In this document: positions 774 through 39,721 of the stretch, in pieces
Numbering within the stretch: the stretch's first letter is position 1
How the letters are laid out: every line of letters starts with the position of its first letter
Assembly (NCBI GenBank): GCA_964035545.1
Contig: OZ037765.1
Coordinates: 35,240,080 to 35,304,079, forward strand
DNA from: Bugula neritina
Taxonomy: Eukaryota > Animalia > Bryozoa
DNA length: 64,000 bases
Reading direction: 5' to 3'
The notes under the pieces: model-generated
What the model was told of the DNA's origin: nothing
The model's database searches: none
What the model saw: only the letters and a program-made list of their open reading frames with translations
Translations under genes and position numbers: made by a program

Positions 774-1010
774 GTTCAACACAGAATCAGTGAGTACTGT
801 AAGAGAAAGAAGGACATTCTAACTGGACAGCTGGTAGTTGCTAGTGACACTCTCTCTCATGGAAGGAAACTCTACCTGTTTCCTGGATACAACGGAGTTT
901 CTGGTACAGATATCCATCAGGGAGCTACTCAGATAGAAGGAGAGAATAAACCAGAGTCAGTTGGCTCTACCATGTTATATAGAAAACGGAATTCATGTTC
1001 TATAATATAA
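774..1010 (+). CDS. Terminal coding exon of caspase gene A (end of p10 subunit plus short tail with polybasic/CaaX end); upstream exons lie outside the window
   Basis: tttcag acceptor at 768-773, then phase-0 frame VQHRISEYCKRKKDILTGQLVVASDTLSHGRKLYLFPGYNG...MLYRKRNSCSII*. The caspase C-terminal signature (S/D)TLxxKLYLFPG is present and the exon is homologous to 9100-9215. Confidence 0.85.
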   Translation, partial: VQHRISEYCKRKKDILTGQLVVASDTLSHGRKLYLFPGYNGVSGTDIHQGATQIEGENKPESVGSTMLYRKRNSCSII

Positions 1011-2294
1011 CAGTCTGTCTGATTTTCAGCTTTATTACCAACATTTAATCTACCACAAACAAGAAGATACATTCATGACATCATTTCCCTTTAGCTTTAG
1101 CAGCAAATGTATAGACAAAGAATTATATTCTATGCAAGTTTTTTTACATTGAATAACATCTTAATTATTATGTAATCATGTTGCTACTTTATCTATTTCA
1201 TTATTTTATATAGCCTCAACAACTACTCATAATACTTTGTATTTTGCATCTTAGAAGTTAATTAATGCATAATTGAGTTTTCCAGTTGTCTATTTGAACC
1301 TTTGATTTTGGTAAAAATGATACATTTTTCAACCGGAATTTCTAAATAAGTTAAACTTTGATCGTCTTCATGTAAAATAATGCTAATTAATTAAAGTTGA
1401 GGTTCTTTCATGAACACAACTTCTTTTGTTATAATTTTAATCTGGAACACAGGCTTTTCTCAGTTTATACTGCATCTACTTTTCTCTCTATAGCAGTAGA
1501 AGGTTGACTGTAGTATAGCGCTGCCTTTTCCCATTACAAAAGATAGTAAATTATTACCTAAACATTTTCAACTATACCATATAACATAACATAATATAAT
1601 AACAATCTGGGATTTTTATATACTCCAAGTTTTACTCTAGTTTAAAAATAAAGTACTAAGCTTATTCTAAAAGTGACAAAAATCTCTTATAATGTATTAA
1701 CCATGACTACTGTCTCAGCTAGAAACTGTAGCTTAATTCAAGCAAACATACTTCAAGTCTTGACTCAGAGAGCTAACACAGCTTTAAGGAAGCTGAATTA
1801 TGTGATATGCAACTCAAAGTGAAATAACTTCATGTGAATAGCTCAGCTACAGAGAGAGACATGGAAGCACAACTCTACCATGTGTACATTAGCAAACAAT
1901 AGGCCCTTTGCTAAGGGTTGGGCACAGATTTCTTAAAAATCTTGTACATATCAAAGGTTCTACTAAAACTAGTAAAGTCATGCAGCTAAAAGTCGTACGA
2001 ATTCAGAAGTATCAGAATATCAGAATTTTGCCAGTATATGTTTCCAGAGCTATTTCTGAGATAAAGAGAGTAGGTTTGAGGTCCCTGACGCCATTTTTTA
2101 TTTATCAGAAATGAACAATTCTTTGAGCATAACAAATACAGAAATGAGGTAAAAGTAAAAGATGAAAAATTTCACAGACAGCCTAGAAAGATAGACAATT
2201 TGATATTTATTCTTCTTATTCTCCATCCCATTTCATTTCAGATATTATAACAATAGAGGGCTTGAAACTGTGAAGAATTTGAAGGTTGACCTTA

Positions 2295-2517
2295 GTAATG
2301 CTGTGTAATGCTGTGTAATGCTGTGTAATGCTGTGTAATGCTGTGTAATGCTGTGTAATGCTGTGTAATGCTGTGTAATGCTGTGTAATGCTGTGTAATG
2401 CTGTGTAATGCTGTGTAATGCTGTGTAATGCTGTGTAATGCTGTGTAATGCTGTGTAATGCTGTGTAATGCTGTGTAATGCTGTGTAATGCTGTGTAATG
2501 CTGTGTAATGCTGTGTA
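2295..2517. repeat. (GTAATGCTGT)n 10-bp tandem repeat, ~22 perfect copies
   Basis: Direct reading. Confidence 0.97.
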
Positions 2518-2666
2518 AAATGTTGGAGTCCTGGCAGTGTCAGCTGTTTATTACTCACTTGAATGTATTATTGGAAATGTGAACCAATTCCTAAACAACA
2601 ACTACAAAGTTCTCTTTCTACCAGTTTATTATGAGATACATCTATCATGCATAATATTAATCATAT

Positions 2667-3214
2667 TGTAGTGAATTTTAGTAGTACAATTAGTTAGTAT
2701 ATTATATCGAAAGGGTTGACTCTATGCCGGACTGACACGCGAGGCCGGCAGCATCTTGTCGTCAGGATGGCACCACCAGTGACAGCCAATCAAGTGTGAC
2801 TGATAATTAACAATAGGCGGAGCTGTCAACGTGTTGCGAAAGCATGCTAGGCAGCTTGAGCCGCAGAGCAGATTGGGACTTGATCATGAACAGTTGTGTA
2901 TAAATTGCTCTATATTATGTAATCGTGTGCATTAGTGTTAGTAACTTTTATTGCTGTATAATTCGTAAAAAACAAACTCTATTCAATTGTGAGAAACCTG
3001 GTGAAGTGGCTTTGCATAAGTAGACCCTCTAATTATAGTGAATCGTAAATTCACTACAGTGGTGGCAGCAGTGGAATCTCGCTTATTGCAAATGCTCCTA
3101 GCCAGGGAGTAAAAAATGGCCAACGATGAGGACATACCCGTCAGGAACCGGTAGTGATGGAGGAGGATAACATAGGCGACCCAGCGCTGCCTATGGACAG
3201 GTACCATTTGCGGG
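2667..3214 (+). mobile_element. Gypsy LTR retrotransposon 5' fragment: LTR (2667-3058), tRNA-Leu-type PBS and start of gag
   Basis: TGTAG...CTACA termini, PBS tggtggcagcagtggaat at ~3060-3077, preceded by ATAT. Homologous to the reverse complement of 23420-23972. Confidence 0.8.
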
Positions 3215-4980
3215 CAAACATCAATAATATCATCATCCTAAAACTTAATGCTATTACATACAGTGATTAAAACTTTATTTTAAACTCATACTTCTAAAGT
3301 ACTTTGACGTTTACTACTTATGAATGTTTAGTACAGTATTTACTTGCTATAGTTGTATTCTTCCTAACAATAAAATACATGATGCACAAATGACTATAGC
3401 AATATTTCCTATCCAAGGCTGCATGCAGCAAAGAAGCAAGAATTTCTAGCTCACCTTAGTATCTATGCAATATTTGAGTTTGGATTACCATGCACTTCCA
3501 GCTCTAACATCTAGGTTGTTTCATTGTAATTTAAGCACTGTTTAAACTTTTCAAGAAAATGAGTTTTACCAACATTATAGGTGTTAGTATTCAGTAGTGT
3601 GGTTACTGTAGGGACAGCACTTAATGATCTGTATATTGCAACATAGCGTGTCATATTCATATCATCATCACATATCTGAGAAGTGTTTTTACTACAAAAT
3701 TTTTAACACACCCACATTTCTTTAGTAAATAATGTTTATTATATAGGTAAGCTTTAAATTATCATGTTCAGTTCCTCATAATATTTTACAACATTGAAAA
3801 TCTTTAACACTACAGTAGTTAGTGAATTGGGTTCTTCTCATACCATTGTTGCTTCAAAAATATCAAGGACTCGTATACCAAATAAATATGCAATGTTTTC
3901 TAATCTTTTCTATATTTTCCACAGTTTACTTATACTTAGCTAAAAAGATACACAATGTCTAAATAGTTGTAAAAAAATAAAAAGTTTGCCTTTTATTTGG
4001 CTCAACCAGGTCATAAATTTTGCAGTTAGATAATTTATCACAGCAATTATAAGGAGCCAATCAATTTTCTACTTTTCACCAACCGAAACAAAACTTCTGT
4101 CTAAGGCTTTTTAATCAAGAGGCTACCAAATACACTTATTAAAAATTTTATGTTTATCTTAATCCTTCAAAAGGATAGTCATAATCAAATTGAAAATCAG
4201 TCAACAAAAACCTAATGTAGGCACTGATGGGTCAATAATTTTCTATACCAGTTTCAAATTTGTTAGCTTAATTCTCAAGCAAAACAGTGTAGCACAATGC
4301 TTTTAAATTGTAATAGATCTCAGGCATGCACCTTTTAGTGGATGATTTCAAATTATCTGCTAAGCAAAGAAAATTGAACGAAAACCAGCAGAGCCAATTC
4401 ACAAACCAGTAACTAAATATGATCTAAAGGAATAAAAGTATATTTACCAAGGATGAAATATTAAATAATACAAAGTTGCAGAAAATCTATTATAAAAGAA
4501 TGAATTGACTAAGCTTCAACTTCATCCAGGTCATCGGCCTGTGAAGTCAAAACTTTGTATGCAGTAGCTTCTGGGTAACTTGAAGTCAATGTGTTTTTGT
4601 ATGACACCTTTTCTATTTCCTTGCAGTAATGAGATATAAACTATAATAACGTAACAACACTTACACTTTTTGCTGCAGGCTTTGTTTACTATGTAATATG
4701 ACAATACGCCTATCTTGCACAGTAATAACATAAATTACAAACCTTTATGCTATGTGCTGCTTTGCAGAGTAGCACAAGTTTTTAATACACCAGTAATATA
4801 TGGTTAAACATTTTAGTAAATAGGTGGTTTGACAAAACTATTAGCATAGTAATGCACATTCGAACAATTTATCTTGTATGTTTAGGGTGCAGAAGTTATC
4901 AAAGACCAGTGGGTCAAATTTTGCTCATTGGACATAATGTACCTTTTTATATACATTGCTTGAAATATAGTTTCTCATAG

Positions 4981-5640
4981 CTCGGAAAAGAACGGATTGA
5001 AATCTTTCTCTCAGAATTAACATTAGTAGCTCTAAAAAGTAGCTCAGACCTCATTTATTTCAACTGTAAGCAAGTGTACATATTAAATAACTTATAGCCC
5101 ATCAGTTTGTGTACCAAGTTTATGAATGTTATGTCCTTTTCCAAATAAAAAACTTCTTTATACTATAATAACAAAATAGAATGGATTGTGTGTTTTTCCA
5201 GCAGTTGCTTCATTAGTGGTACAATTACTTGTCCATGGTCTATTTTTAAACAAGCAATTTTTTAATTTTGCAACTATAAAACAATAAAGTTTGGAAATAT
5301 ATTAAAAAGATCAACTCAATGCTCTAAACTTATAATATGAAATTAAAAATGTACATGTTTTTTACAAATAACTTTTGGAAGCATGCATTTTGCACGTACA
5401 AATGTGCAGAATCTTATATAAGTTGAAAGGGCAAGATATTCCAGTGGGACAATCTTCTGATTGATTGAGTTTTACCTGGTCTATTGCAAGTATTATTGTA
5501 CTAGTTGTCTGTTTTCAACACAGAGTACATGACTGATGTTGTTATTTCAGGCACTCCTTTGACAAGCCCAGATGTTCAAAAACTTAAAACTGCCATTGCA
5601 GATCTAAAACAGAAGAAACAAAAGGAAAGCTCCAAAAATG
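4981..5640 (+). pseudogene. Putative upstream exons of caspase gene B (4981-5065; 5524 or 5551-5640) encoding a SAM-like helical segment
   Basis: AG/GT-bounded segments translate to LGKERIEIFLSELTLVALKSSSDLIYFN and (YMTDVVIS)GTPLTSPDVQKLKTAIADLKQKK. The SAM resemblance was judged by eye; use of the 5524 acceptor would create a TAG at the junction. Confidence 0.4.
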
Positions 5641-5898
5641 GTAGACTTCAGGCTTTTTAGAATAGCTAGTATATATCTCTCCTTTAGCATTTTGATGTAT
5701 AAGAAAATGAACATAATATGTCAAGTTTATTGCTCCGCCATAATAATTTTTTTTATGCAACAGTCAAAACTCGTACAAGATTGTCAATGCAAGAAATGTG
5801 ATAATGAGAATTACAGAAAGTACAAAATTCTGCATTTATATACCTACGCTATCAATATATTACATTACTGACAGAGTATGTTAATATTCACAATACAG

Positions 5899-6091
5899 AG
5901 ACTGTCAAATAACATCAGCAAACTGCCACCACCTCTTCTGTGGAAGATGAGTCGAGTGATCTCTCTGATGATGATGAATATATGGTACCTTCACCATCTG
6001 CTGTTGGCAGATTGAAACATCTCAAACAAGTTCCTGTTCCTACAACTAGACAAGATATAATAGACCTCTTTCCAAACACTAACAAGATGAT
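5899..6091 (+). pseudogene. Caspase gene B acidic linker exon (disabled)
   Basis: ETVK*HQQTATTSSVEDESSDLSDDDEYMVPSP...IIDLFPNT. In-frame TAA at 5910-5912, and the donor phase does not match the next exon (apparent frameshift). Confidence 0.55.
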
Positions 6092-6301
6092 GTAACAGTA
6101 TCTTATTATAGCAATTAATGATGTTTCTTACCAAGCTGACCTTTTAAAAGTATTTGGTGTAGACAGATTTTTCATTGCCTTGTGTTTTGACTTTTATATT
6201 AAATTTTGAGGCTTTTTCGTCTATGTTACTGTTCCTAAAAATTATGTCATGAGATTTATACAGTTAGAGGAATAATACTCTCAATAATTTGTTTCTACCA
6301 G

Positions 6302-6466
6302 GTGTTTCGTGTGACAAAGCCGAGGGGAACTGCTTTGATAATCAATAACAAGAAAATAAACAATCAAAAGGAAAGATTGGGTTCTGAAATAGATGTTGAA
6401 AATCTCACAGATATGCTCTAATTATTTCAGTTCAATGTCAAGTCAGAAAAAGATCTTACCGCTAAG
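6302..6466 (+). pseudogene. Caspase gene B exon: start of p20 subunit, with in-frame stop
   Basis: VFRVTKPRGTALIINNKKINNQKERLGSEIDVENLTDML*LFQFNVKSEKDLTAK. PRGxALIINN and RxGSxxD caspase motifs; TAA at 6419-6421; cag/gtaa boundaries, 165 bp, phase 0-0. Confidence 0.88.
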
Positions 6467-8039
6467 GTAACAGTACAATATATCTATTTCTTATATCTAA
6501 ACTTGTCTCACTGACAAACTTTTTACACAGCTGCAGCCTAGACTACATGCAAAACAGCTACTTGAAGACACATAGTTGCATTTGGTGCAGCCTGCAACCT
6601 GCACTGTGCACTGACTTGTCAAAACGCCTAGCTTGTGCAGTGAGTGACTTAAAACCAGGTTGGAACAGTTGCACAGCGACTGTTGAGTTTGGCAATACCA
6701 GCCATTGCACCAGCTCTGCAGCTAGTAGTTGAAGTGACTGTGCAGAGTAAAAAAATAAAAGAAGCAGGAAGGCAGCAATAGGATAACGTGGCACAAGGGC
6801 ACCAGATGTTTAGAACCAGTGGGCCATGTAATATTTGTTGTAAGCTAGCATCGCTGAGATAGAAACTGGGTGGCGTCACTGCGATATGTGCACACACCAG
6901 TGGTAGTACCTTATGGTATATGAAAAATTGTTGTTGATCATACGGCCTTAGTACTGGTGACGCTTTCACTGAGTTTCTGATTTATCATGCTGCCGTCAAC
7001 TGTTGTTATGATCATTATGGTGTTGACCAATAGCTGAAAATTCGGATCAAGTTCTATAGATGTGGCATGAAAAACAGCAACCACTATCAAAAAAGGCAGC
7101 AGGCGTGCAAAATAATTACTGCAGACAATGAGAGGTATAGTGACAAGCAGTATCAATGGAGCGCATTTTTTGTTGCTGCATTTAGAATAAGCACATTTCA
7201 ATACCTTTGATGACTGTCCACTTGAGGGTAAACCTGGTGCCAGCAATATATATCTACATACTTCCATTAAACATCAGAAGGAGAGAGTAGATGGCTCTAC
7301 TGATCGTACTTTCCCAACCGAGCCAGGAGCAGAAGGCATACCTAATTTGTATTTTTCCAAGTGAACGTCTCATCTCTGTGTGTTCACTTTTAAGGAAATT
7401 GTAACTGCTTAGAGAAAAAATAAGATTAGCTAGATATGATGAAACATGGGCTCTTGATGTTCAGAGAGCTAGGTAGATAATGATCAACAGGTACGGCCGT
7501 GGGTATTAGCACTCAGATAAGCAAGGCAGTCCACTGAACTTCAAACATGATAGGGATTGGAGATTGCATTTTTTATGTGCTTGAAGAATTTCTTGCATTA
7601 ACGAGTCATCAGTCTGCAAAAAATCCTTCTCTTTCAGTAGAGTGGTTTAAAAAGTTTAAAAAATGGCCATTACAGTGCGGCAACTGGAAAATGAACTTAA
7701 TTGCTTTTATGTTCAATTGCCATAATTATTGCTCGCATACAATTTTCATTAAAGCACAAAAGTATTTTTTATCAAATTTTGTTGGCTTGGAAAATTCAAT
7801 ATCTCCCAAACCTTTTTATTGTGGCTTCAGCAGATACATTCCATGTTTATAATATTCTGTATTGCGTTCTCCTAACTTGTTAACCGGTTTAGTCAAAAAT
7901 AAAAAGCATAAAACTGAACATTGCATTTATTATAGTGATAAACTTTAGTTAATATTTCTACGTGAAAGTCAGCATTCCTATAAGATCATCATTTTGCATT
8001 TACCTGTCAGAATGCTGTTTTTTCTTTTAAAACCAACAG

Positions 8040-8256
8040 GAAATATATGAAACAATTGAGAGAGAAGTAAATGATATTAGAAATGATCATGGAATGTTCT
8101 TCCTGTTTATTGGTTCCCATGGAGCTGAAGAATATGTCTGTGGATCAGATGGAGAGTTGGTAGAACTGGCAGGCGTCTATAACTTGCTGTCTGTTCCTCG
8201 AAAGAAAGAGATTCAGGATAAGCCTAAATTGGTCCTTATACAAGCGTGTAGCAATA
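8040..8256 (+). CDS. Caspase gene B catalytic exon (His-Cys dyad)
   Basis: EIYETIERE...MFFLFIGSHGAEEYVCGSDG...KPKLVLIQACSN. SHG and KPKxxxIQAC motifs; aacag acceptor and gtgagt donor. Confidence 0.92.
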
Positions 8257-8360
8257 GTGAGTGGCAACCTTAATATTTCTTTTATATTAACAAATGAAAA
8301 TAGAAATCATTTGATCTGAGCATTACAAGATAATAATAAAAATGCTATCTATTGATTTAG

Positions 8361-8480
8361 GGATACTTAAAGACAAAAAATATGCTGCACATAGAGTTTT
8401 ACGTGCTGATGTTGGTAACGGAGCTGAATTAGAGAAAAATCATGGTGAAAATTTGTATATTTTAAAAGCCAGCTTCCCGT
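8361..8480 (+). CDS. Caspase gene B exon: intersubunit linker and start of p10
   Basis: RILKDKKYAAHRVLRADVGNGAELEKNHGENLYILKASFP. Phase 1-1; tttag acceptor and gtaagg donor. Confidence 0.85.
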
Positions 8481-8646
8481 GTAAGGATACACCTAATTTT
8501 TTGAATTACAATGAAAATGTTCTGTGTGCATGGATATGTTTTTATGAAATATAAAAATAATGTTTCAGTGTATATATGTGATTATTAGCTTATATCTTTT
8601 AACATTAGCTTCCGGTCATAAGAGTTCAGCATTGTATGTTATCTAG

Positions 8647-8756
8647 CATATCCTTCTTTCAGATATCTTGGCCGTGGTTCTCTACTAGTCAGATGTTTTG
8701 TCAGAACCATGTACCGACATGCCTGTCACAGAGATATGCATGAGATCTACAAAGCT
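8647..8756 (+). CDS. Caspase gene B exon: p10 core
   Basis: SYPSFRYLGRGSLLVRCFVRTMYRHACHRDMHEIYKA, matching caspase G-Y-x-S-W-R-x4-GS. Phase 1-0; gtgagt donor. Confidence 0.88.
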
Positions 8757-9099
8757 GTGAGTTTGTTGAATTAATTATTAGGTCAACCCATTTAATGAAT
8801 ATACACTGTATAGTGTCTTTCAACAGTGATAATAATTTGTACCTCTCATGCACCTCCTTCGTTATAATAATCTGGGTGGCTGGTGATAAAATGAGTAGCA
8901 ATGACAACAAATTATAACCAGTTACAGCAAAAACTTGTACAGCTAGCAAACTTGTGTATTGGCTTGAGGCAAAACGTTAGTTTTTGCAAACTCAAAACTA
9001 CATTTGAATGCCAGATGAATAACCATGTTAACACGTTCATTTAAACATTTGGTAAAATTCACATTTCTTTGAAATCACATATGCATTATACTAATGTAG

Positions 9100-11049
9100 G
9101 TACAAGGCCGGATTAAAAAGTTCTGTGCAAAAACTAATCGCGATGTTGGGCAACTAGTACATGCTACAGACACCCTGACACACCATAGAAAGCTTTACCT
9201 GTTTCCAGGATATGATGGGGGTTCTGATAGAGAGGAGCTGAGTTTACTTCAACTCAGCAAGAGATTTCAATATCCTCCATCCAAACAACTTCTGTCAAGT
9301 TCAGCTGCACAGTCCACACTGTCAGAGACAGCCAGCACCTCACAGCAAGCAGAGACAGCCAGCACCTCACAGCAAGCAAAGACAGCCAGTACCTCACAGC
9401 AAGCAGAGACAGCCAGCACCTTACAGCAAGCAGAGACATCCAGTACCTCACAGCAAGCAGAGACAGCCAGAACCTTACAGCAAGCAGAGACAGCCAGCAC
9501 CTCACAGCAAGCAGAGACAGCCAGCACCTTACAGCAAGCAGAGACAGCCAGCACCTTACAGCAAGCAGAGAGAGCCAGTACCTCACAGCAAGCAGAGACA
9601 GCCAGCACCTCACAGCAAGCAGAGACAGCCAGCACCTTACAGCAAGCAGAGACAGCCAGCACCTCACAGCAAGCAGAGACAGCCAGCACCTCACAGCAAG
9701 TAGAGACAGCCAGTACCTCACAGCAAGCAGAGACAGCCAGAACCTTACAGCAAGCAGTGACAGCCATCACCTCACAGCAAGCAGAGACAGCCAGTACCTC
9801 ACAGCAAGCAGAGACATCCAGTACCTCACAGCAAGCAGAGACAGCCAGAACCTTACAGCAAGCAGAGACAGCCAGCACCTCACAGCAAGCAGAGACAGCC
9901 AGTACCTCACAGCAAGCAGAGACAGCCAGAACCTTACAGCAAGCAGAGACAGCCATCACCTCACAGCAAGCAGAGACAGCCAGTACCTCACAGCAAGTAG
10001 AGACAGCCAGAACCTTACAGCAAGCAGAGAGAGCCAGTACCTCACAGCAAGCAGAGACAGCCAGCACCTCACAGCAAGCAGAGACAGCCAGCACCTTACA
10101 GCAAGCAGAGACAGCCAGCACCTCACAGCAAGCAGAGACAGCCAGCACCTCACAGCAAGTAGAGACAGCCAGTACCTCACAGCAAGCAGAGACAGCCAGA
10201 ACCTTACAGCAAGCAGTGACAGCCATCACCTCACAGCAAGCAGAGACAGCCAGCACCTCACAGCAAGCAGAGACAGCCAGCACCTCACAGCAAGTAGAGA
10301 CAGCCAGTACCTCACAGCAAGCAGAGACAGCCAGAACCTTACAGCAAGCAGTGACAGCCATCACCTCACAGCAAGCAGAAACAGCCAGCACCTCACAGCA
10401 AGCAGAGACAGCCAGTACCTCACAGCAAGTAGAGACAGCCAGTACCTCACAGCAAGTAGAGACAGCCAGCACCTCACAGCAAGCAGAGACAGCCAGCACC
10501 TCACAGCAAGTAGAGACAGCCAGCACCTCACAGCAAGTAGAGACAGCCAGCACCTCACAGCAAGTAGAGACAGCCAGCACCTCACAGCAAGCAGAGACAG
10601 CCAGCACCTCACAGCAAGTAGAGACAGCCAGCACCTCACAGCAAGTAGAGACAGCCAGCACCTCACAGCAAGCAGAGACAGCCAGTACCTCACAGCAAGC
10701 AGAGACAGCCAGCACCTCACAGCAAGCAGAGACAGCCAGCACCTCACAGCAAGTAGAGACAGTCAGCACCTCACAGCAAGCAGAGACAGCCAGTACCTCA
10801 CAGCAAGTAGAGACAGCCAGCACCTCACAGCAAGCAGAGACAGTCAGCACCTCACAGCAAGCAGAGACAGCCAGCACCTCACAGCAAGTAGAGACAGCCA
10901 GCACCTCACAGCAAGCAGAGTCAGCCAGCACCTCACAGCAAGTAGAGACAGCCAGCACCTCACAGCAAGCAGAGACATCCATCACTTTCCAGCAAATAAA
11001 GATAAAACGCAAGCGCAAATCAAAAAGGAAGTTTTGTAAACAACAGTGA
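9100..11049 (+). CDS. Caspase gene B terminal exon (650 codons): end of p10, ~61x ETASTSQQA repeat, polybasic stretch and CKQQ*
   Basis: tgtag acceptor; VQGRIKKFCAKTNRDVGQLVHATDTLTHHRKLYLFPGYDGG reads without stop into the repeat and is in frame with ORF 9757-11049 (offset 657 bp). Confidence 0.85.
   Translation, partial: VQGRIKKFCAKTNRDVGQLVHATDTLTHHRKLYLFPGYDGGSDREELSLLQLSKRFQYPPSKQLLSSSAAQSTLSETASTSQQAETASTSQQAKTASTSQQAETASTLQQAETSSTSQQAETARTLQQAETASTSQQAETASTLQQAETASTLQQAERASTSQQAETASTSQQAETASTLQQAETASTSQQAETASTSQQVETASTSQQAETARTLQQAVTAITSQQAETASTSQQAETSSTSQQAETARTLQQAETASTSQQAETASTSQQAETARTLQQAETAITSQQAETASTSQQVETARTLQQAERASTSQQAETASTSQQAETASTLQQAETASTSQQAETASTSQQVETASTSQQAETARTLQQAVTAITSQQAETASTSQQAETASTSQQVETASTSQQAETARTLQQAVTAITSQQAETASTSQQAETASTSQQVETASTSQQVETASTSQQAETASTSQQVETASTSQQVETASTSQQVETASTSQQAETASTSQQVETASTSQQVETASTSQQAETASTSQQAETASTSQQAETASTSQQVETVSTSQQAETASTSQQVETASTSQQAETVSTSQQAETASTSQQVETASTSQQAESASTSQQVETASTSQQAETSITFQQIKIKRKRKSKRKFCKQQ
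9325..10985 (+). repeat. 27-bp coding minisatellite, ~61 copies
   Basis: Unit gagacagccagcacctcacagcaagca; variants differ by substitutions only, and the frame is preserved throughout. Confidence 0.97.
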
Positions 11050-16102: not shown

Positions 16103-17788
16103 GTAAGTCTCAGATTATTATTATGGTGTTTAGGTAAAATAAAATAAGAATATTTTCAGTGGAGGTGCCCACGTGCACAAATAGGCAGGTGGAGCACATC
16201 AATACCAACATTTTCACCACCAAGCCAACATTCTTTGTTTTGTATCTAGAGTTCTCAATAAAAGAGGTAAATTTGCAGGGGTCAGGCAATTTTCAAGGAG
16301 ATATGATGGAATTTTAGATATGTAATTATTTGAGTGATTTAAGTTTTTTATTTAAATTTTTTTCATACAAATCCTGACTAAAGATTGACATGTGGACAGA
16401 GCCTATGACACAATGTGTTGCTGTTTTTCTGGAAATTCCTGATGTTCTCTGAGCTGACACTTTTGTTCCAGCATCTAGATTAATAAACTTTAGGATGTTA
16501 TGAGCACTCCATAGTGTCCTCTTAACTCCAGTTCATTCTGACAAATACTACTTCTTCTATCTCTCTAGAAATTAAAATTTTTGTTATATGTAGACACTCT
16601 ATAGTGTTTCCTTAACCCCACCAATTTCTATTCCAGTTTGACAAATGGAACTTTTTCTGCAGCTCTGAAAATTAAAGATTTCAAAATCAGAGTTAGCCCC
16701 CCATTTTCACCCAATATTATTGTGTTTTATCAATTGGGTTAATATTATTCTGGTGTAAACTAACCTTTAGATAGGAATGATGAGCTGATTAAAATTAATA
16801 TACAGAGAGTGGTTATTGGCTGATGAGTTATGTCTTTAGATTTTTCTGTATCATGGTCAAAATAAGAAGAGGTCCTTTTGTTACACTAAATACTTATCGA
16901 ATTATCTACCGACTATAGATAAACAAAAAGTTGAATATGTAATACATGTTGGCGCAGTGGTTTTGTAATGTATAACATGTTACATACAGTGTATAGTTTC
17001 TTAGAATAAAGAGTTGTATATGAAATAGACTAATATGTTGCTAGCTATTTCTTAGGACAATATAAAAACATATTTTGTTCTTATGTCTAAATACATTTCC
17101 GACTTTTCTAGCCAACAGAAAGTTAATTCATTACATTATTAGAAACATATTTCCAAAGAGTAATGTAGCTCAAAGTAACGGCTATTACTGTTAGAGTTAA
17201 AATTTGACAGAGCTCTTTATTGCACTGAATATTACAAGCAAGGGAATGAAGAACAACAAAAAAAAAAAGAAAAGTATAAAGTAAATAGCTATAAACTTGC
17301 TATTACAGAAAAGCAGCTAAGTACAATAGGCATAAGCTAAGAAACAAAAGCACATTGAAATAACATCAACCGATTCAATGTGTGGCTATAAACATATTGT
17401 AGTGAATTTCGCAATTCACTATATTATGTGGGTCGACTTATACAAAGCTACTACACCAGGTTATTTACGTTATTACAAGTTTATTATTTACAAGATACAA
17501 GAATTGAATTACTACTAACATGAATTGAACGATTACATAATAAGTGAGCCTTTACACACAACTACTCTAAGCGAAGCCCCAAGCTGCTCTGCCCGGCTAG
17601 CTACTTAGCGTGCTTCCACTACGAGTAGTTAGCTCCACCTGCTATCAATTAACACTCAGTCCTGATTGGCTGGTATTAGTGGTGCCACTGTCGACCATAA
17701 GATACAAGTCGCAGGAGGTCGATGTAATCGATCTCCACAATAGCATACAATATAGAGTTGACCCTTTCAATATAATACTAATAATAAA

Positions 17789-19464: not shown

Positions 19465-22400
19465 TCACAGTTGCGTCTCCTTGTATTTCGGAAACGCAAC
19501 TCTCAATTGCTCGTCGCCCCAGATTTCTTTTATGATAGCTGATGGATGTTTTTCCACTGCATCACACAATAAATCTTTTAAATAAGATGGAGGCGCCCTA
19601 GTGCGTTGCCTACGCTCCAACTGCACTGGGGAATTTGCTACGACTGGTGACTCTTTCACCACTGGTGGTGTCGCCAGTACGGGGGGTCCACCAGTACAGG
19701 TGGTCCTCCCCAGCTGCCTCTTCCTCATGATTTTGAGGAATTTCCATCTCATCCGGGGTGATGGGCCTGTCGACCGGCTCCACAGGTGGTGGAGCTGGCT
19801 CGGACAGGTCTTCTGGTGTGTTGGCCTCCTCCTCCTGGGGTGGAGGTGGCCGGGGCAGGTCGGGCGGCGCGTCGGCCGGCGCGTCAGTCGGCGCGTTGGC
19901 CGCCCTGTCCTGATCTTGCAGTATCTCCTCTATCTCTCTATACGCCATGCCTCGCCCCCTCATAGGAGGGCGTCTAGCGGGCTCTAAGAGAGGAGGTGCT
20001 TAACCTGTTGCATCAGGACTCGCCCAGTGAGGTTTCAGCCGTGCTTCGTTCTGGACCGACACTTGTCCAGACCGTTCCACTTTATAAGTGTGATTAGGCA
20101 TCACCTCAATCACGCAGTAGGAACTTACGAACTTCGGCTGCAACTTGGCTGCCTGTCCGCGTCGCCGGCAATGACTGGTCATCCAGACCCAGTCTCCCAC
20201 CTTGTATAGGGGGGGGTCGTCAGAGTCACCACTTCTGACCTGCCATTGCTGCTCACGTAGCACCTCGTGAGCCGTCCCCATGCGCTTTATGAGCTTGTCC
20301 ACGTAATCGTGGACGTTGCTCTCCGGAGCTGGAACATGATAGGTTACGTGCTCAGGAACCCTGGTTTCTCTCCCCAGCATGAGAAAATTAGGGGTCTCCA
20401 GTGTACTGGAGTGAGGGGTACTACGGTAAGCTCGCATGATTTGCGGCAGCACCATGTCCCACTCTTCCTGGCTCCTACCGATAAGCAGGCTTCTCAGTGA
20501 GTCTCTTAGCATTCGGTTGTTCCGCTCCACAACCCCGTTCCCTTGCGGGTGATACGGGGTCGTCCGACTCTGGTTTACCCCCCACATTTTACAGAGATCG
20601 CTCATAAGTTACGACTGAAACTGGGCGCCTTGATCAGAGTGTATCTGTTCCGGCAAGCCGAAATAGCAGAACACATGCTGATCCAAAGCTCTGGCCACCG
20701 AGGGGGCCGACGCATCTGGAATAGCCAGTGCATCAGCCCACCGCGTGAAATGGTCAGCTAGTACCAGTATCCAGTTATTACCTCTCACTGTTGTGGGCAT
20801 GGGGCCTACCAGATCTACAGCAACTATTTGCCACGGACGACCGGCATGGAGGCGGCGCCTCCCTGCGGTCTCAGTGGGGCCGCCGCGCTTACTAGCTTGG
20901 CACACCTCGCACTTCCGCACCCGGAGTCGGACATCCCGGGTCATACCGGGCCAAAACCACTGAAGTTGAAGACACCTAGTCACCCGGCTAGCTCCCGCCT
21001 GAGCTTGCTTATGGGTGTCCCAGATCAACTTCCGCCTCAGAGCGGACGGGCAGACTACCTTCTCTTGTTCACTGCGATTGGTGCCGGCTGCCAACGTTAT
21101 CGTTAGCAGCCCATCGCTGTTAAACCGGAGAGAGCCCCAGCGGTCACAGAAGTACTCAAACTCTGCACTTTTTACTCGCTGTTCGGCCTTACTCGGCCGC
21201 CGTTCCTCCTTCTTGGCCCGGACTAGGTCAGCTACCACCCCTGGTAGTGTAGCCTGGAGCCGACACAGCTCTCTGACGTTCCTGAGCAGCGTGGGGTTTG
21301 CGTGAAGGTTGTTAACAGCTTCATTAGGGGATTCAAAGTTGTCCTTCTTCCTAGCTGTATACACCCGCTTTCCCCAACTGTGCTTCAACGTCCGAGCGAG
21401 GGGGTCCACCATCCTTGCGCTCAATACTCTGGCACTGCTTACACCCATCTGCCTGGCGGCCGCTGAGTTCGTCGGCGTCACCGTGTTTCTTACCGGGTTG
21501 ATGTTCGATCCGATAAGAAAACTCTGCCAGGATTTCCAGCCAGCGCACTACTTGGCTTGATGGTTCCGCCCGTCGACACAGCCATATCAAAGACGCATGA
21601 TCCGTCCGAAGCCGGAATGTGCGCCTATATAGGTATGGTCTAAAGTGTTTGACCGCCTTGACTACTGCCAAGAGTTCCCTCCTGGTTGTACAGTAGTTCT
21701 TCTCAGGCGCCGACAGGGCTTTGCTATAGTAAGCCACCGCCACCTCGCGGCCATCTTGGACATGCGACAGCACAGCCCCCACATTATGGTTACTGGCATC
21801 AGTATCCAAAATGTACTCCTTCGCAGGGTCAGGATACCCCAAGATGGGTGCTTCCACCAGGCGATCCTTTACGTGGTCAAATGCCTTCTGCTTGGCCTGT
21901 GTCCACTGCCATCGCACCCCTTTTGCTGTCAGCCGATTTAACGGCTGTGCAATTCCGGCGAAGCCTGGTATGTACTGACGATAGTACCCTACCAGTCCCA
22001 GGAATGCCCGCAATTCAGGGAGGTCGACAGGGACAGCCCAGTCCCTCACAGCCCGTACCTTCTCGGGGTCGGTGGCGACCCCGTCTCGACCAACTACATG
22101 GCCCAGGTACTTAACCTCGCGATGCAATAATGCACACTTAGAGGGCTTGAGCTTCAGACCAGCAGCTCGAAGTCCGTCAAACACCTCCCTGAGTCGACTG
22201 ACATGTGTGTCGAAGTCGGGGGAGATGACAATGACATCATCGAGGTAGATGAGCAAGGTCTTCCAGTGTAGCCCACTCAGGACCTGCTCCATGAGTCGCT
22301 GGAAGGTGGCCGGTGCGGGCGTAAGTCCGAATGGCAACACCTTCCATTTCCAGAGCCCATCCCGCGTAATAAACGCGGCCTTGTCCTGTGCTTCAGGAAT

Positions 22401-23400
22401 CAGGGGCACCTGCCAATACCTGCTTAACAAGTCCAACGTGCTGAAGAACTTGCTACCAGCTAAGGCATCGAGCGACTCATCGATCTTAGGAAGAGGGTAA
22501 GCGTCCTGGATGGTCATGCTGTTCAGCCTGCGATAATCAACGCAAAACCTCCACCTCCGATCCTTTTTCCGAACCAGGACAACTGGAGAACTCCAGGCCC
22601 CATGGCCTGGCTCAATCAGGTCCCGGTTCAGAAGGTCTTGCACCTGAGGGCTCACTTTTCTCTCCTTCTCAGGACCTAACCGGCGGGTCGGCTGCCAGAT
22701 GGGCGCCGCCCCCGCCGCCAGGGGTATCTCATGACAGACAGTCTTAGTCAGACCCATGTCGTGGTCGCCGCAACTGAACACGTCCTTGTACTCAGAGAGT
22801 AGCCGCGCCATCATCAGGCGTTCTCGCTTGCTCTCACAGCCATCACAGGCATCCTCGTTCAACTCCGCTACGTGTTCAGGCACCGGCCCCCTGCTGTCTC
22901 TAGTGGGTACCCCAGGGGCTTTGTCTGCTGTCTCCAGCGCGGCCCTACATCCTCCTCCTGTACGGAGTGCAACTTCCCCACTAGAGACCCAGCCGGCAAT
23001 TCTACCGGCTCCGTGAAAGGATTTACGCACTGGACCAGGAACTTCCCCGCTCATCCAGTCTATTCAGACTGTTGGCGAGCTGGACGCCCCCCAATGCACC
23101 TTCCACCACTCCTAGCTCGGAGATTTCTCTACAGTTCACTCTGCAGCAAACTGTAGCTCGGGAGCGCCCAGGTACAGTACAACGCTACACCACCTGCACT
23201 CCCCCCACCAAGGGTCGGCCAAGTCGGTCGACACAGGCCAGCTCACGTCTGGCCATCACCACCGCCGACTTGCTAAAGTCGATGTAGCACCTGTGTCGCT
23301 TCAGAAATGGCATGCCCAAGATGGCGTCCTCCTTGAGTTGACTGACGATGAAGGTCTCACTGATCGTCTGATCACTGACTCTACCAGTCAACTGGATTAC
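19465..23400 (-). pseudogene. pol: Gypsy pol (protease remnant, RT, RNase H, integrase, Pro-rich tail), disrupted
   Basis: RFCVDYRRLN, LPFGL, YLDD, TDAS, DLVGP, HSDQG and PYHPQGNGVVER motifs spread across several frames. Confidence 0.93.
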
Positions 23401-24011
23401 CCCATAGAAAGGAAACCCGCAAGTGGTACCTGTTCATAGGCAGCGCTGGGCCGCCTACGTGATCTTCCTCTATTACGCGTCGTCCTCGACAGCCATCTTC
23501 TTTCTACTCCCTGGCTAGGAGCATTTGTATTAAGTGGGATCCCACCGCTGCCACCACTGTAGTGAATTTCGCAATTCACTATATTATGTGGGTCGACTTA
23601 TACAAAGCTACTACACCAGGTTATTTAGGTTATCACAAGTTTATTATTTACAAGATACAAGAATTGAATTACTACTAACATGAATTGAACCATTACATAA
23701 TAATGAGCACTTTGCACACAACTACTCTAAGCGAAGTCCCAAGCTGCTCTGCCCAGCTAGCTACTTAGCGTGCTTCTACTACGAGTAGCGAGCTCCACCT
23801 GCTATCAATTAACAGTCAGTCCTGATTGGCTGGTATTAGTGGTGCCACTGTCGACCATAAGATACAAGTCGGCTGGAAGTTGATATAGTCTATCTCCATA
23901 ATAGCATACAACATAGAGTCGACCCTTTCGATATATAACTAACAATCAATTGCACTACTGATATCCATTACAATATTTACTGTCAACACTCCCACTAACT
24001 CCACATTGAAT

Positions 24012-27000
24012 CTAAATTATATACAAGTGTTTACTGCATAGTTGCAAAAATCTAGTTTTAGGCATTGGCTTTGTCAACAGGTCTGCCAAAATTACCTCAC
24101 TTGGACAAAAGTTTGTTGCTACAGTTTTTGAGTTAACAGCTTCCCTAACATAGTGGTATTTAATGTCCATGTGCTTGATACGCTTGGTGCTTTTGTTATT
24201 GTTAGCAATGGCTGCGGCAAATTGATTGTCTACATTAATAACAGTTGCGTCCAAGATTGGACTATCTATATCTGTTAGGAGTTGTCTTAACCAGACCGCT
24301 TCTTTTGTAGCTTCAAACAATGAGATGTATTCTGACTCAGCGGTTGAGAGGGCAACCGTATTTTGTCCCTTGCTAAACCATGTGATAAGATTGTCTGCAT
24401 ATGAGAATACTACCCCAGTTGTTGAGTGCCGATCATCACTATTATCTGCCCAACTAGCATCTAAATATCCAATTAATGTTCCATTATTTTTTCTGTAACT
24501 AAGTCCAACATCACTAGAACCTTTCAAATATCGCAAAACACGTTTAGCTGCAGTAAGGTGTGTTACAGTGGGGCAGGAATTGAACTTAGAGAGGACTCCC
24601 ACTGCATAGGCAATGTCAGGTCGGGTTGCAACCGCAAGGTATAATAGACTGCCTACGATTGACTGGTACAGCTTTTGATCAACTGGTTTGCTTCTATCTG
24701 ATTTGACCAGCTTTACATCTATAGCCGCAGGTGTAGATACTGGATTACAGTTTTCCATATTCTGAACTTTGTGAGTATTTTTGCGATTGATGAAGGCCTG
24801 CTGACTTATCTTTAGAAAGTTTTCTCCAGGCTCTATTGACATACCAAGAAGGAAATTTAGTTTACCCAAGTCTTTCATTGCAAATCTATTGGCTAGTCTT
24901 TGTTTAACCTGAAGCAGAGCAGATTCAGTGCTTGACATAATCACAAGATCATCTACATAAATAGCAATAATGGTTTTTACATATATGCACTGGTCAGCAG
25001 ATGACTGAGTAAAACCTTCTGATTTCAAAAAATTATCTAGAACAGCATTCCAACACCTAGGTGATTGCTTGAGGCCATAGATTGACTTATTGAGTTTACA
25101 CACTAATTTCTCTTTTCCCCGTTTCACGAAATCCTCTGGTTGTGACATATATATCTCTTCACTTAAATGTCCATTTAGGAATGCCGTTATTACGTCCATT
25201 TGATGAATGTACATGTTGTTGCAGAGAGCATAAGCTAGCAAGGCTCTTAACGATGGATATTTTACTACTGGCGCATACGTTTTATCATAGTCCACACCAG
25301 CTTGTTGTGTGAACCCTCGAGCTACTAGTCGACCTTTGTAGCGCTCAATGTTTCCGTCTTTGTCGTATTTAGATCTAAATACCCATTTACAGTCAACCGT
25401 CTGACGGTTGCTAGGTAAAGAAACAAGCTCCCATGTGTTGTTCTCAACCAAAGAGTAGTATTCAGCTTGTGCTGCAGCTAGCCATTCTCTTGAATGTGGA
25501 CTGGTCAATGCTTCTGCATTGCTTTTAGGTTCTACAATTCCTTGGGCGTAGCATGCTCTGTGACTGGTTTCTGCTGCTACAGACGAGTTACTTATATATT
25601 CATCTATACCAAATCTTACTGGAGGGTGATGTGTGTGAGTAGGCCTACGTGGTTCATCACAGCTTGGAGCATCAGAGTTGTCCTCACTTGGGGCACCAGA
25701 GTTGTCTTGAGTTTGCATGTCTACAGAAAACCTGTTTGCATATGGAGTTGCCTCCACTATTTCGTTTGTAACTCAAGCACCAAATTTTGTTTCGTCGAAT
25801 GTAACATCACGTCTGATTACAACCTTTTTGGAGTTGGGATTGTACAGCCGGTACCCTTTTGACTGTGAGGCATAGCCCACCAAAACCATATTTTCTGCTT
25901 TGCTGTCTGGTTTTGACCTGAGTTGCTCAGGAATATGACTGTAAGCGAGACATCCAAATACTCTAATATGACTTATATTTGGCTTATAACCAAACCAGCT
26001 TTCATGAGGTGTCACTGATGTTGCTTTGGTGGGCAGACGATTTCTTGTGTATGCAGCAGTGTTGATAGCTTCAGCCCAAAATAACTTTGGTAAACCTGAT
26101 TGAATTATCATAGCTCTGGCTGACTCGCATACGGTACGATTAAAACGCTCAGCAACACCGTTTTGCTCTGGGGAGTATCTTACAGTGGTTTGGTGTTGAA
26201 TACCATGTGACAATAAATATTGTTCAAAGCTTTTGCTGGTGTATTCACCACCACCATCACTGCGGAGTGCACCAATTTTTAGACCTGTGTGATTTGTCAC
26301 CAATGCCTGAAACTCCCTAAATCTATCAAAAACCTCTGATTTTTCTTTAATAAAACACACATAAGAATATCTTGAAAAATCATCAATAAAAGATACAAAA
26401 TATGCACTGCCTCCAATAGACTTTGTTTTCATAGGACCACAAACATCTGTATGCACTAATTCAAGTGGTCTACTAGACTTGATACCTACATGCTTACTAA
26501 AACATTTTCTAGTCATTTTGCCTTTGATGCATGGCTCACACACACCTACATGTACATTAGATAAGTCTGCCCCTACTACTAACCTATTTTGTTGAGCAGA
26601 TTGAATGCTTTGCATGCCAGCATGTCCAAGGCGTTGATGCCACAAATCAGTATCACTAGCAGGGGAAGCAACGTGGTAGTTCGAGTACATAGTGTCCAGA
26701 TAATATAGTTCATTGCAGAGTGTTCCTGTTGCACGCAGCTTTCCTGATTTGTTTTTCAGCCAACAGCGGCTATGTCTAAATTGTATTATAAGATTCTTCT
26801 CTGCTGCTGATCGTACTGAAAAGAGATTAGTTTTCAGTCCAGGCACATGCAATACGTCATACATTGTGTTCAGCTTTATTTGTTGGCCTCTTATGCGAGT
26901 GAAAATTTCTATATTTCCCTTGCCAACGACTTCCAGCACATGACCACCAAGAGTAACTTTCTGTGGAACTTCAAAGTTGTTGTATACCTTAAATAGATCT

Positions 27001-27877
27001 TTGTTGTGCGTCATATGTGAAGTGGCACCTGAGTCTATGAGCCAGTTATTCTCCTTTTCCCTTTTTGATACGAGGAAGGCACTCTCAGTTTCCTCAATTG
27101 CATTCTGATTCTGTATTACTGGTTTAGCCTTATGACTGGATTCATCAGCTAGACCTAGTTTTGGACAGTTCCGTATAAGATGCGCTGGAGAGCCACACTT
27201 GAAACATGTCCTTTTTGTGTAGTGTGGCTTGCTTCGATAGTTACCAGTGGCGAGAGCTGTGTCTATGTTACGATCTGTTGGTACACGAGTTTGTTCTTTT
27301 CGTCGTTGTTCTTCAGACATAAGAGCCTGTTGCACATATAGTTCAGTGTCAGGTCTTCGAATCTAGCTTCTAGAGCAATTACCAGTGTTGAGTAGCTGCT
27401 AGGTAGGCTACCAAGTAGTGTCACTACCTGATCTTCTTCGCTAATAGAGGAGTTTACAGCAGCCAGTTTGTCAGTTAATTCCTTCATATATCTAATGTGC
27501 TGCTCAATCGATGCATTTTCTCCCATTACGGTTCTGAAATATTGCTTTTTTAGAAACAGTCTGTTAGTTAACGTGTCACGCTCAAAATGTTGTTGTAAAG
27601 TGCCCCATGCTTGCTTTGGTTCTGTGCAGCTGGTTATGAGATATAGCAAGTCATCGCTCACCGAGAGTATAATAATTGACATAGCCTTGCTTGATTTCTT
27701 TGTATAGTCCAGTTTCGTTTGAACACCAGCTGATTCTTCAGGCTCAGTTATAGAGCCATCAACATATCCCCATAGCTCTTTAGCAATCAGCAAATGCTTG
27801 AGTTTAAACTTCCAAGTGCTAAAATTTTTACTCGTCAGCTTGTCTACAGATTGCTTGTCTTCAATAATTCCAGCCAT
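24012..27877 (-). pseudogene. Copia gag-pol polyprotein with one frameshift (~27300) and one premature stop (~25773)
   Basis: CFKCGSPAHLIRNC zinc knuckle, IDSGAT protease, WHQRLGH, HTDVCGP, PEQNGVAER integrase, YVDD RT, ADLLTK RNase H. Confidence 0.95.
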
Positions 27878-29024: not shown

Positions 29025-29165
29025 AATGGCTAATCTGAAGAATCTGGAGACTCTTAATATATCATGGAATAACTTCAGTGAAGGATTACCTGATGTATTC
29101 ACATCAATGACATATCTAAGAGAGTTGGGTATTAGTGGCTGTAAACTACCAACTCTACCTGAGAG
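29025..29165 (+). CDS. LRR exon A (141 bp, 2 LRRs)
   Basis: tactatag acceptor and gttagt donor, phase 2-2; MANLKNLETLNISWNNFSEGLPDVFTSMTYLRELGISGCKLPTLPE. Confidence 0.9.
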
Positions 29166-31519
29166 GTTAGTGAAAAGACAATTTGCATAAATAACTCATA
29201 TATAGACTACTTTCTGATGTCTAAGATTTACCTGCATGTTTTTCGACTTGCATTTTTTGTTGCTAACTATTTTGTGAAAATTTATCAAGTCTGTTGAACT
29301 TGACATGAATACATGCATGTATATACAGAACAAATTCTAAATAGCATATACAGAAATAAAAATAGGCTATATGTAATATAAAAAGTGCAGGTTATGGAAT
29401 ATATAGGATTTGTTACAATATTTTAATCTATTATCTACTTCAAAGAAGTAAAAGTTAGTAAGTCAAGTTAATTAGCCATTTCTTGAAAAATAAAAAGCCT
29501 AATGAAAACAATTGTGCTCAAATAAATATATCTAGATAAACCCAGATAGCCTTTAAGCTGTTAGCATTCTGGCTTTTGTGTTACAGTTTTGTTATTTCTT
29601 AAAATGATGCCTGTGCCTTGTAGCATTTAGGAGCAGCAGTGGAGAGATTGAGATAGCCTAAGTTCTTTGAATTCCTTTATAAATTTTGTTGTTGCTCATA
29701 ACATAAATTCTTTTGCTACATTTCTAATCTAGAACGCAGGCTTTTCTCAACTTCTCCATTACTGCACCTACTTCGTATGTAGTAGTCATCTCTGTCAGCT
29801 GCAGTAGACTCAAGGTCCTAGTTAATAGTTAACGTAGGTGGTAGGTTAAAACATAGTTACATAATGAAATAGGTAAAAGGCCAAGCTAAGCCAACCACTA
29901 CTGAAGCTGAAAGCCCAAGTTTCCCAACTCATCAAATTGCAGCATAAACTGAATTCTCTGAAAACCACTTCTGAAAGAAATTCTGGTTGAAAAGTAAATT
30001 AAGCAGATTCTGACAAGGGAAGCAGTAAAAGCACATTGATAATATTGAGTTATTAACTTTTTGCTTGGGTTTTCAGTGAAACCATTTATTTTTATAGCTT
30101 CTCAACTTCTCATGCTCCAAATATCTACATCAGCTAGTCTTATTGTAACTTAGCTGTAGTTTTACAGCTGGCTTGGCTGATCCTGGGTCACAAATTGTTA
30201 TGCATAAGTGTAAACTATCATCCCTGGTTTGTAAACAAGCACAATGTGGTCTTTAGTTTCTACTGATGTTTTATTGGTAAAACTGTCGTGAAAACTATAC
30301 AATTAATGAAATTGTGAATATGCCATAATGAATGATAATATGTGATGAAACTTTTATCAGTGATAATTTGACACTAACTAATAAGCTTCAAGTAAAGAAC
30401 AAGTCTTGCTATAAAATTCAGTATACACCATCTAAATTATTGAAATTGATATTAAAAAAGATAATACAAATGCCATAAATGATTGTCAAAAATACTACAA
30501 TAACAATAATTACCTTGTTAGACCATCCAGGAATGGAGCTTATAACTTTGATGTCAATGTAGTAGGTATTTATTCTCTACTTTGATAATATTGATTTAAA
30601 TGCAACAAAAAATTTAACATAACATAAGTGAAAGGTTACTCAGCAGTTTATGCTACATGTTAGTTGACTGAAAGTGTAGCATAGAATGAGAGCTAAAAAT
30701 AAAATATACCTCAATGAATGAATCATTTCAGGAAGCTGATGGTGTAAAAAACTATTTATATAATTTAGTCATGCATAGTGAAATCATGCATATGAGGAAA
30801 TCATGTTGACTTTCGTGTGCAAATTTGTCATAGCCATAAAAGCAAAACAGCTACATATACATGACTAATTCAATGGGTTTCTAATTGGTTAACTTTGTTT
30901 GTTTTGATGAGAGCAAGAAATTTCACTGGCATTCCAATTAATTACAATAAGCGAGGATAAGTACACATCAAGTATAACATTGTAACTAAAACTGTCAAAT
31001 AAAGCTATTAGACCTATTGTAAAATAATTATGCGATAAATATATAGGGCAGACAAAATATTTCAAGATGATATTGAATTAAATTATGTCTGCTTAAATAT
31101 AAAATTTTTTAAATACTTTTTGTATAAACTGAGCTTTGCTTCTCTTAGTAACATTTTTCTTTTAAAGACGTTTTGGCCATAACACGAAACTATGTAAAGC
31201 ATTCAAGGTTCCTTGAACATAATGTAGTACAAACTCTTCAAAGTATAATTATATGCACATGCTATAACACAGCTAAGCTGCTGAGCAGGCATGTGAGTAA
31301 TTACATGTAACTAGCAGTGAAACTGGACCACTGCAGAGTTGAAAGATCAATTCAGCTATGAATTGTATAGTCATAACAGATAAGACAACAAATAATAATA
31401 GAGATTTAATCATAGTTGCCATATCAGCATTGCCCAGCAACGAAAACCACAAAAATTCGTTCAAGCATATTTTAGGCAACGGCTTTTCATGTTGGGAGGA
31501 CACAACTATTAATTATAGG

Positions 31520-38400: not shown

Positions 38401-38450
38401 CTACAACATAATCTGGTACCCTGTTCTGTTGCAGGTGAGACTTTGAGGAA
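32460..38450 (+). mobile_element. Second Gypsy element (relative of 17398-23972): partial 5' LTR, PBS, gag and decayed pol; no 3' LTR seen
   Basis: ...attcacaaca then gtggtggcagcgatgggat PBS at ~32648; gag-like ORF 32541-33257; RT/RH/IN fragments 34594-37939 colinear with the nested copy. Confidence 0.9.
33620..33716. repeat. (GGCCAA)n hexamer microsatellite inside the Gypsy gag region
   Basis: Direct reading, ~15 units. Confidence 0.95.

Positions 38451-39632: not shown

Positions 39633-39635
<3 letters not shown>

Positions 39636-39719
<84 letters not shown>
39636..39719. repeat. (AT)n microsatellite
   Basis: Direct reading. Confidence 0.97.

Positions 39720-39721
<2 letters not shown>

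Follow-up and report, generated by a model that had tools for sequence, protein, structure and literature searches.

The DNA analyzed here is a 64,000-nucleotide (nt) stretch from the bryozoan Bugula neritina (contig OZ037765.1, positions 35,240,080 to 35,304,079; hereafter the window), which carries at positions 774 to 11049 the 3' parts of two neighboring caspase-coding units, here called gene A and gene B. As an earlier note on this DNA had pointed out, both continue beyond the caspase end motif into a tail that terminates in a CaaX-type prenylation motif, CSII in gene A and CKQQ in gene B. Both motifs are present in the letters, and the tails, which the note had put at about 40 and 610 amino acids (aa), measure 39 and 611 aa after FPGY in the translated last exons. 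The same note had described the locus as two caspase genes, a description that does not hold for either of them: gene A is the terminal part of an LRR-Roc-COR-caspase gene (LRR, leucine-rich repeat), most of which, i.e. its LRR exons, a Roc-COR exon and six linker/caspase exons, precedes the start of the window, and gene B is not intact, having two TAA stop codons, an AT donor and no Roc or LRR regions. The elements of gene A are as follows:

774-1010, plus strand: last exon of gene A (AG acceptor, phase 0), encoding the caspase end motif KLYLFPGY and then a tail up to RKRNSCSII and the stop
996-1007, plus strand: CSII, the CaaX motif of gene A, read from the letters (substrate status from PMC10320760 Table 3)
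199-762: minisatellite with a 36-nt unit, lying in the final intron of gene A and present too in its duplicate L003
L001 1665-7033, upstream of the window: at least nine LRR exons of gene A, 141 nt each
L002 5675-7527, upstream of the window: Roc-COR exon of 1,853 nt, with Roc, COR-A and COR-B
L002 7775-9860, upstream of the window: six linker/caspase exons

Gene A was searched exon by exon. Throughout its exon chain all boundaries conform to AG/GT, the phases are consistent and there are no stop codons. In the Pfam search the Roc domain scored 30.5 bits against PF08477, exceeding the cut-off of 27, and it retains intact G1, G3 and G4 motifs (GNTMAGKTS, DMGG and THKD); it is followed in order by COR-A (E-value 1.8e-5) and COR-B (E-value 0.02), both of which fall below the curated cut-offs. 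This Roc-COR region aligns over its full length to annotated MFHAS1-like proteins, and its closest solved relative is the Chlorobium Roc-COR. An acidic, Asp-rich linker exon separates it from the caspase, and genome matches to PF00656 (Peptidase_C14) fall on the gene A exons. The SHG and QAC motifs, which supply the His-Cys dyad, align to caspase-2, the best solved match of the catalytic exon, and the Asp-pocket residues Arg179/Gln283/Arg341 are retained, with RHGSD aligning to RNGTD and the SMR before GSL being assigned to the pocket by analogy to the alignment. The active-site pentapeptide reads QACSG, in which the Ser at the variable position is atypical. Comparison with L003, an inverted duplicate 230 kb distant and the only close duplicate of gene A, gives a ratio of nonsynonymous to synonymous divergence (dN/dS) of 0.26. 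In conclusion, gene A is predicted to encode LRR, Roc, COR and caspase in one intact chain and not a stand-alone caspase. Its central domain is Roc-COR and not NACHT or NB-ARC, which places gene A outside the NLRs; genome-wide, an exon-wise search, from which split exons could hide genes, recovered a single weak match to NACHT and none to NB-ARC.

The order LRR array, Roc, COR is likewise found in ROCO proteins such as human MFHAS1/MASL1, Chlorobium tepidum Roco and LRRK1/2, and Watersipora relatives of gene A have been named 'MFHAS1 homolog' by RefSeq. The present proteins differ from these in having a caspase after COR instead of nothing or a kinase, in numbering at least 71 copies, and in the CaaX end of gene A. 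With the initiator caspases (caspase-2, -8, -9 and CED-3) gene A shares the caspase fold, the His-Cys dyad and the Asp-pocket residues; it differs from them and from their activating platforms in the absence of a CARD, DED or death prodomain, in the combination of sensor, switch and protease in one chain, and in having QACSG for QACRG.

The same architecture is widespread in the genome. At least 184 caspase-domain matches, with 133 matches to the catalytic exon, were recovered in the 216-Mb assembly, along with at least 71 full-length Roc-COR exons (a lower bound), 70 of which are stop-free. By comparison of positions each of the 71 has a same-strand caspase exon downstream, at 8 kb or less in 68 cases and at 10-15 kb in three. 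Watersipora subatra (XP_067947674.1 and XP_067948342.1) and amphioxus (XP_002614028.1) have single gene models that combine all four of LRR, Roc, COR and caspase, and the B. neritina model EB796_002463 unites Roc, COR and caspase in a single gene. The architecture is already visible in public annotations; in the literature searched, with most subscription journals outside reach, no Roc-COR-caspase fusion was described. These data point to the fusion as a large bryozoan family of candidate immune receptors, with at least 71 members in this genome. Amphioxus models (XP_002614028.1, P0203 and P0204) have a domain order identical to that of gene A, but their caspases carry QACRG and their short ends are devoid of Cys. 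In a quick tree the amphioxus Roc-COR of the fusion groups with amphioxus ROCOs having death or glycosyltransferase ends, outside the bryozoan clade; because of this separate grouping, the fusion may have arisen twice, once in the bryozoan and once in the amphioxus lineage. The amphioxus LRR-Roc-COR proteins P0148 (XP_019614112.1) and P0165 (XP_066267700.1) end in a GT4 'conflict' glycosyltransferase or a death domain, and such alternative ends suggest that the effector after COR has been swapped in animals.

The surroundings of the catalytic Cys vary within the family. In L009-L016 and L018-L022 Glu replaces the preceding Gln (ETCSG, EVCSG, EACS) and Arg at 341 is often absent, so these main-family members may have a substrate preference other than Asp. 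QACSI or QACST stands for QACSG in L004, L007, L023 and L024, making the Gly variable in the gene B branch. L008 (G000:C8:4897700-4905700) is a second caspase copy downstream of a full gene; it has the motif QACNT, and no Roc or linker exons were found for it.

Gene B consists of the following elements:

5551-5640, plus strand: first remaining exon, a linker that in intact paralogs comes after Roc-COR
5899-6086, plus strand: acidic linker exon, with an in-frame TAA at 5910-5912; donor AT, GT in run X1
6302-6466, plus strand: first caspase exon, with an in-frame TAA at 6419-6421, the same in run X1
8040-8256, plus strand: catalytic exon, with SHG and QACSN
8361-8480, plus strand: inter-subunit linker exon
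8647-8756, plus strand: small-subunit exon (SFR..GSL)
9100-11049, plus strand: last exon in one open frame, comprising the caspase end motif, repeat spacer, basic run and CKQQ
9323-10985, plus strand: 27-nt minisatellite of 61.6 copies, encoding a 9-aa unit rich in Gln, Thr, Ala and Ser, of which the sisters' tails hold one or two units
10999-11049, plus strand: basic run and CKQQ-stop, where a 5-nt deletion relative to the sisters shifts the frame

Between 1010 and 5550 no Roc or LRR matches were found, so gene B lacks the upstream domains; its likeness to its sisters (L004, L007 and L008) starts at about 5480, within the short intron after the sisters' Roc exon. The frame does not stay open through the caspase domain, being interrupted by the two TAA codons, and the catalytic motif has become QACSN. 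Contigs of a second sample (run X1) show 17 differences over 5400-6874 and have the GT donor, and neither stop differs. Since neither stop is altered in run X1 despite these differences, an assembly error as their source is ruled out. From these lesions gene B is concluded to be a pseudogene, a recently broken and 5'-truncated copy from the gene A subfamily, now unable to make the protein. The dN/dS, from per-exon counts summed, is about 0.37 on the gene B branch versus about 0.20 on the sister branch, which indicates that gene B was formerly functional and has not always been dead. An insertion occupies 6510-7400 in the intron after the first caspase exon, and its 6841-7102 segment has high depth in run X1 and is probably a repeat.

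The last exon of gene B continues for 611 aa after FPGY and ends in KIKRKRKSKRKFCKQQ-stop. In the DNA alignment of the assembly the coding end of the sisters runs on beyond the gene B stop, and the gene B Cys codon lies out of the sisters' frame. The view that a Cys had been kept in both tails is therefore untenable, the tails being unrelated and the Cys of gene B falling in another frame than its sisters' tails. A wider comparison leads in the same direction. Among 22 last exons of this genome (those of A, B and the 20 paralogs most like gene A) Cys at the fourth position from the end (Cxxx) was found in three, namely A, its duplicate L003 and B, representing two origins: 0/14 in the main family and 3/8 in a long-tail subfamily (A, L003-L007, B and L008), of which A and L003-L007 make up a single clade, well supported in a quick tree that served only for grouping. 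The 14 main-family genes stop 6-20 residues past the FPG motif, and in the sisters of gene B the tail finishes with a pair of basic patches and no Cys; their last exons lie at:

G000:C8, about 5043800: last exon of L004
G000:C8, about 4824500: last exon of L007
G000:C8, about 4903500: last exon of L008

The two patches are 11 residues apart, in the manner of a bipartite nuclear localization signal, and these could possibly be nuclear ROCO-caspases. Outside this set, one of 31 last exons from other bryozoan and amphioxus records (16, some perhaps alleles of this genome's genes, plus three, plus nine from Watersipora, plus three from amphioxus) has Cxxx, in the form CHYR. Near-identity of last exons with B. 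neritina records probably sets this genome within the species group of that name. P0199 of Watersipora subatra, likewise a ROCO-caspase, has a terminal basic run with Cys as its last residue. Across the whole genome the gene A tail has one DNA relative and the gene B tail three, and no shared Cxxx exon, such as a hidden extra CaaX last exon of the paralogs, was found within 2.4 kb past their stops. A metagenome scan with the last exons confirmed nothing, and one with the Roc exons gave 14 short contigs, none of which reaches a last exon; similarly, JGI contigs of the gene A subfamily stop short of it. At L005 5501-6235 there is a different tail repeat, of about 39 nt, with an in-frame TGA, past which the frame ends in KVKQ like that of L006; repeat spacers thus arose twice within the gene A/B subfamily. 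The distribution of tails indicates that the two CaaX ends are independent private gains in a subfamily with fast tail turnover. The idea of a lineage-specific family of lipid-anchored caspases, which the note would have regarded as refuted by a lack of enrichment of Cys at -4 among the paralogs, is accordingly contradicted for the family as a whole. What appears new at this locus is the private nature of the CaaX ends, the pseudogene status of gene B and the derivation of its CKQQ by frameshift.

The CSII of gene A is a canonical CaaX motif, as in CaaX-prenylated proteins, among them the immune GTPase GBP1, which is prenylated and linked to caspase-4. Gene B, with its basic run followed by CKQQ, ends in the manner of K-Ras4B, LKB1/STK11, NAP1L1 and Pex19. 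The present case differs from prenylated proteins such as K-Ras4B, LKB1, GBP1 and ZAP-L in that the motif stands on a caspase end, in three genes only, one of which (B) is broken. Both motifs are genuine prenyltransferase substrates, as the note had held: each was scored '+' and 100% modified in a yeast reporter, which is a reporter and not these proteins (PMC10320760 Table 3), and the same paper assigns CKQQ to LKB1, NAP1L1 and Pex19 (PMC10320760). Scores of a Ras-based screen in the same table are high for CSII (11.35) and low for CKQQ (0.40) (PMC10320760). The further claim of a Cys at -4 behind basic residues stands for the position of both Cys residues and for gene B, where nine of the 12 residues before the Cys are Lys or Arg, in a polybasic run adjoining the motif; gene A has only three of 12, and its duplicate has lost the patch. 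The CSII of gene A is likely to be prenylated if the predicted end is expressed, and because only three basic residues precede it, endomembranes would be a likelier destination than a K-Ras4B-type plasma-membrane anchor. In the literature searched, again short of most subscription journals, no naturally prenylated caspase was described.

Whether such ends could arise by chance was approached from the local DNA, in which 4.9-5.5% of stop-terminated readings end in Cxxx and 1.6% are CaaX-like. For Cxxx to appear in two out of 5-6 new tails of independent origin, P is about 0.01-0.03, uncorrected for selection of the case from a genome scan. In a rough neutral simulation starting from the sisters' tails, Cxxx with at least seven Lys or Arg appeared in no more than 2e-5 of runs, and the gene B tail segment has diverged from the sisters more than the 3' untranslated region (UTR) behind it. 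Because of this neutral rarity and the greater change relative to the 3' UTR, the gene B tail may have been selected before its breakage, with the chances about even; selection on the lipid tag of gene A is graded lower than this.

The window holds one further set of exons of the family:

29025-47716, plus strand: seven 141-nt LRR exons, phase 2 at both ends, starting at 29025, 40533, 41824, 42837, 44698, 45710 and 47576

These probably belong to the next ROCO-caspase gene, the Roc exon of which lies about 30 kb beyond the window end (L006). The LRR exons are 83-99% alike, and their phase 2 at both ends makes in-frame duplication or skipping possible. Across 16 of them (nine from gene A and seven from the window) the proportion of nonsynonymous differences (pN) is 0.28 at ten predicted binding-face positions versus 0.07 elsewhere, a value matched by none of 300 random column sets; overall pN exceeds its synonymous counterpart (pS) in pairwise counts, which are not independent. 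Likewise, the brown-algal ROCO candidate immune receptors of Ectocarpus form an expanded family with phase-2 LRR cassette exons and a diversifying LRR face (PMC11378527). There the exons are 72 nt long and encode one repeat, versus 141 nt and two repeats here (PMC11378527), and the paper contains zero mentions of caspases, listing three genes with another peptidase, IPR009003 (PMC11378527). The cassettes in the window are spread among retroelements. Remains of these lie on the minus strand within 20000-27877 (reverse transcriptase, RNase H and integrase at 20000-23054, and a copia-type set at 24012-27335), with an additional minus-strand reverse transcriptase at 49297-50352. A short repeat at 2656-3215, which resembles the long terminal repeat (LTR) of nearby elements, has copies in a gene A intron (L001 7746-8333 and L002 1024-1438) and elsewhere in the window (17398-17695, 23416-23976 and 32626-32812).

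Thus the reading favored here, and considered somewhat probable as a whole, is that gene A is an intact ROCO-caspase, gene B a broken copy from its subfamily, and the CaaX ends two private gains. As a platform combining sensor, switch and caspase, gene A would resemble the NLR inflammasomes and the Apaf-1 apoptosome; it may act like an NLR without being one. Initiator caspases are activated by proximity. Roc-COR dimerization has been described for C. tepidum (PMC4104024). By analogy, a ligand on the LRR face would alter Roc-COR in its nucleotide state and its dimer state, and this dimer switch would bring two caspase domains together and activate them as in induced proximity, with the Asp-rich linker exon potentially providing self-cleavage sites. 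Gene A, if expressed with its CSII end, would be prenylated and hence a receptor on endomembranes, with most of its paralogs being soluble; gene B, which probably once carried a basic farnesyl tail of the K-Ras4B/LKB1 kind during part of its existence, would now be silent.

Several points weigh against this reading. The mechanism is drawn from analogy, and caspase activity, judged from the motifs, is put in some doubt by QACSG or ETCSG where QACRG is usual. The 5' end of gene A was not seen upstream of the window, making its nine or more LRR exons a lower bound, and none of the RNA runs examined contains the locus, which leaves the splice pattern and the final exons of both genes as predictions. 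L003 ends in RIWNSCSII, retaining Cxxx without the basic patch, and about 28 further located last exons lie outside the survey count. No orthologs of either tail turned up by which selection on CSII could be demonstrated; and the simulation took the sisters as its start rather than the ancestor, ignored local A-richness and slippage bias, and used a threshold chosen after seeing gene B.

The most serious alternative accepts the same gene anatomy and takes both Cxxx ends as accidents devoid of any prenyl-dependent role: that of A would be a read-through into former 3' DNA, that of B a frameshift product, and the basic runs nuclear localization signals like the sisters' KRK-x11-KH(R/K)K. That about 5% of random local readings end in Cxxx, that the differences between the tails of A and L003 include the loss of two basic residues, that L004, L007 and L008 are basic-ended without Cys and the Watersipora member has its basic run with Cys at -1, and that the finding was picked out by a genome-wide scan, are all in keeping with it. 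However, both motifs are of the good-substrate kind, with a baseline of 1.6%, the nine basic residues directly preceding the gene B Cys are rare in the simulation and sit in a segment more changed than the 3' UTR, and both gains fall within one eight-gene subfamily; this alternative is considered unlikely, if still to be reckoned with. It is more improbable that gene A is not expressed as one chain, either being a young pseudogene or having its LRR array parted from Roc by an 8.6-kb intron. LTR-element and long interspersed nuclear element remains do sit in that intron, which runs from the last LRR cassette to the Roc exon, and the RNA runs are silent on the locus; against this, the splice sites and phases are intact, the chain is stop-free, the dN/dS relative to the duplicate is 0.26, and relatives have single LRR-Roc-COR-caspase gene models. 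Yet more improbable is an arrangement in which B serves gene A as an alternative 3' cassette, with one Roc-COR exon splicing to the caspase exons of A or B to give one sensor with two effector ends bearing different lipid anchors. Gene B begins exactly in the intron following a Roc exon, the phase-1 acceptor of its first exon is intact and fits the phase-1 donor of the gene A Roc exon, and L008 offers a second Roc-less copy downstream of a full gene; but the two in-frame stops in B are unchanged in the second sample, L008 lacks two linker exons needed to accept the splice, and a partial tandem duplication accounts for the layout with no need of new biology. It is scarcely credible that lipid-anchored caspases form a lineage-specific family in which the polybasic-CaaX end is conserved and the prenyl group differs per paralog, for although two neighbors and one duplicate carry valid motifs, Cys at -4 is absent in 19/22 last exons here and 30/31 elsewhere, the tails are non-homologous and B is broken.

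A bolder extension of the favored reading, that bryozoans rely on single-chain LRR-Roc-COR-caspases as the main immune receptors inside their cells and that one subfamily twice gained prenyl anchors under selection and became membrane-bound, is at present doubtful; if it held, gene A would be the first caspase-domain protein to be prenylated in nature. The case for the lipid tag has weakened since it was first put forward, appearing to concern a single working gene and its duplicate. LRR-bearing ROCO proteins, whose output is not known, have been proposed for a long time to be immune receptors, and here the output would be a fused caspase that is easily assayed. The control of an effector by the nucleotide state of Roc-COR, a question posed for LRRK2 and MFHAS1, may thereby become testable within one chain.

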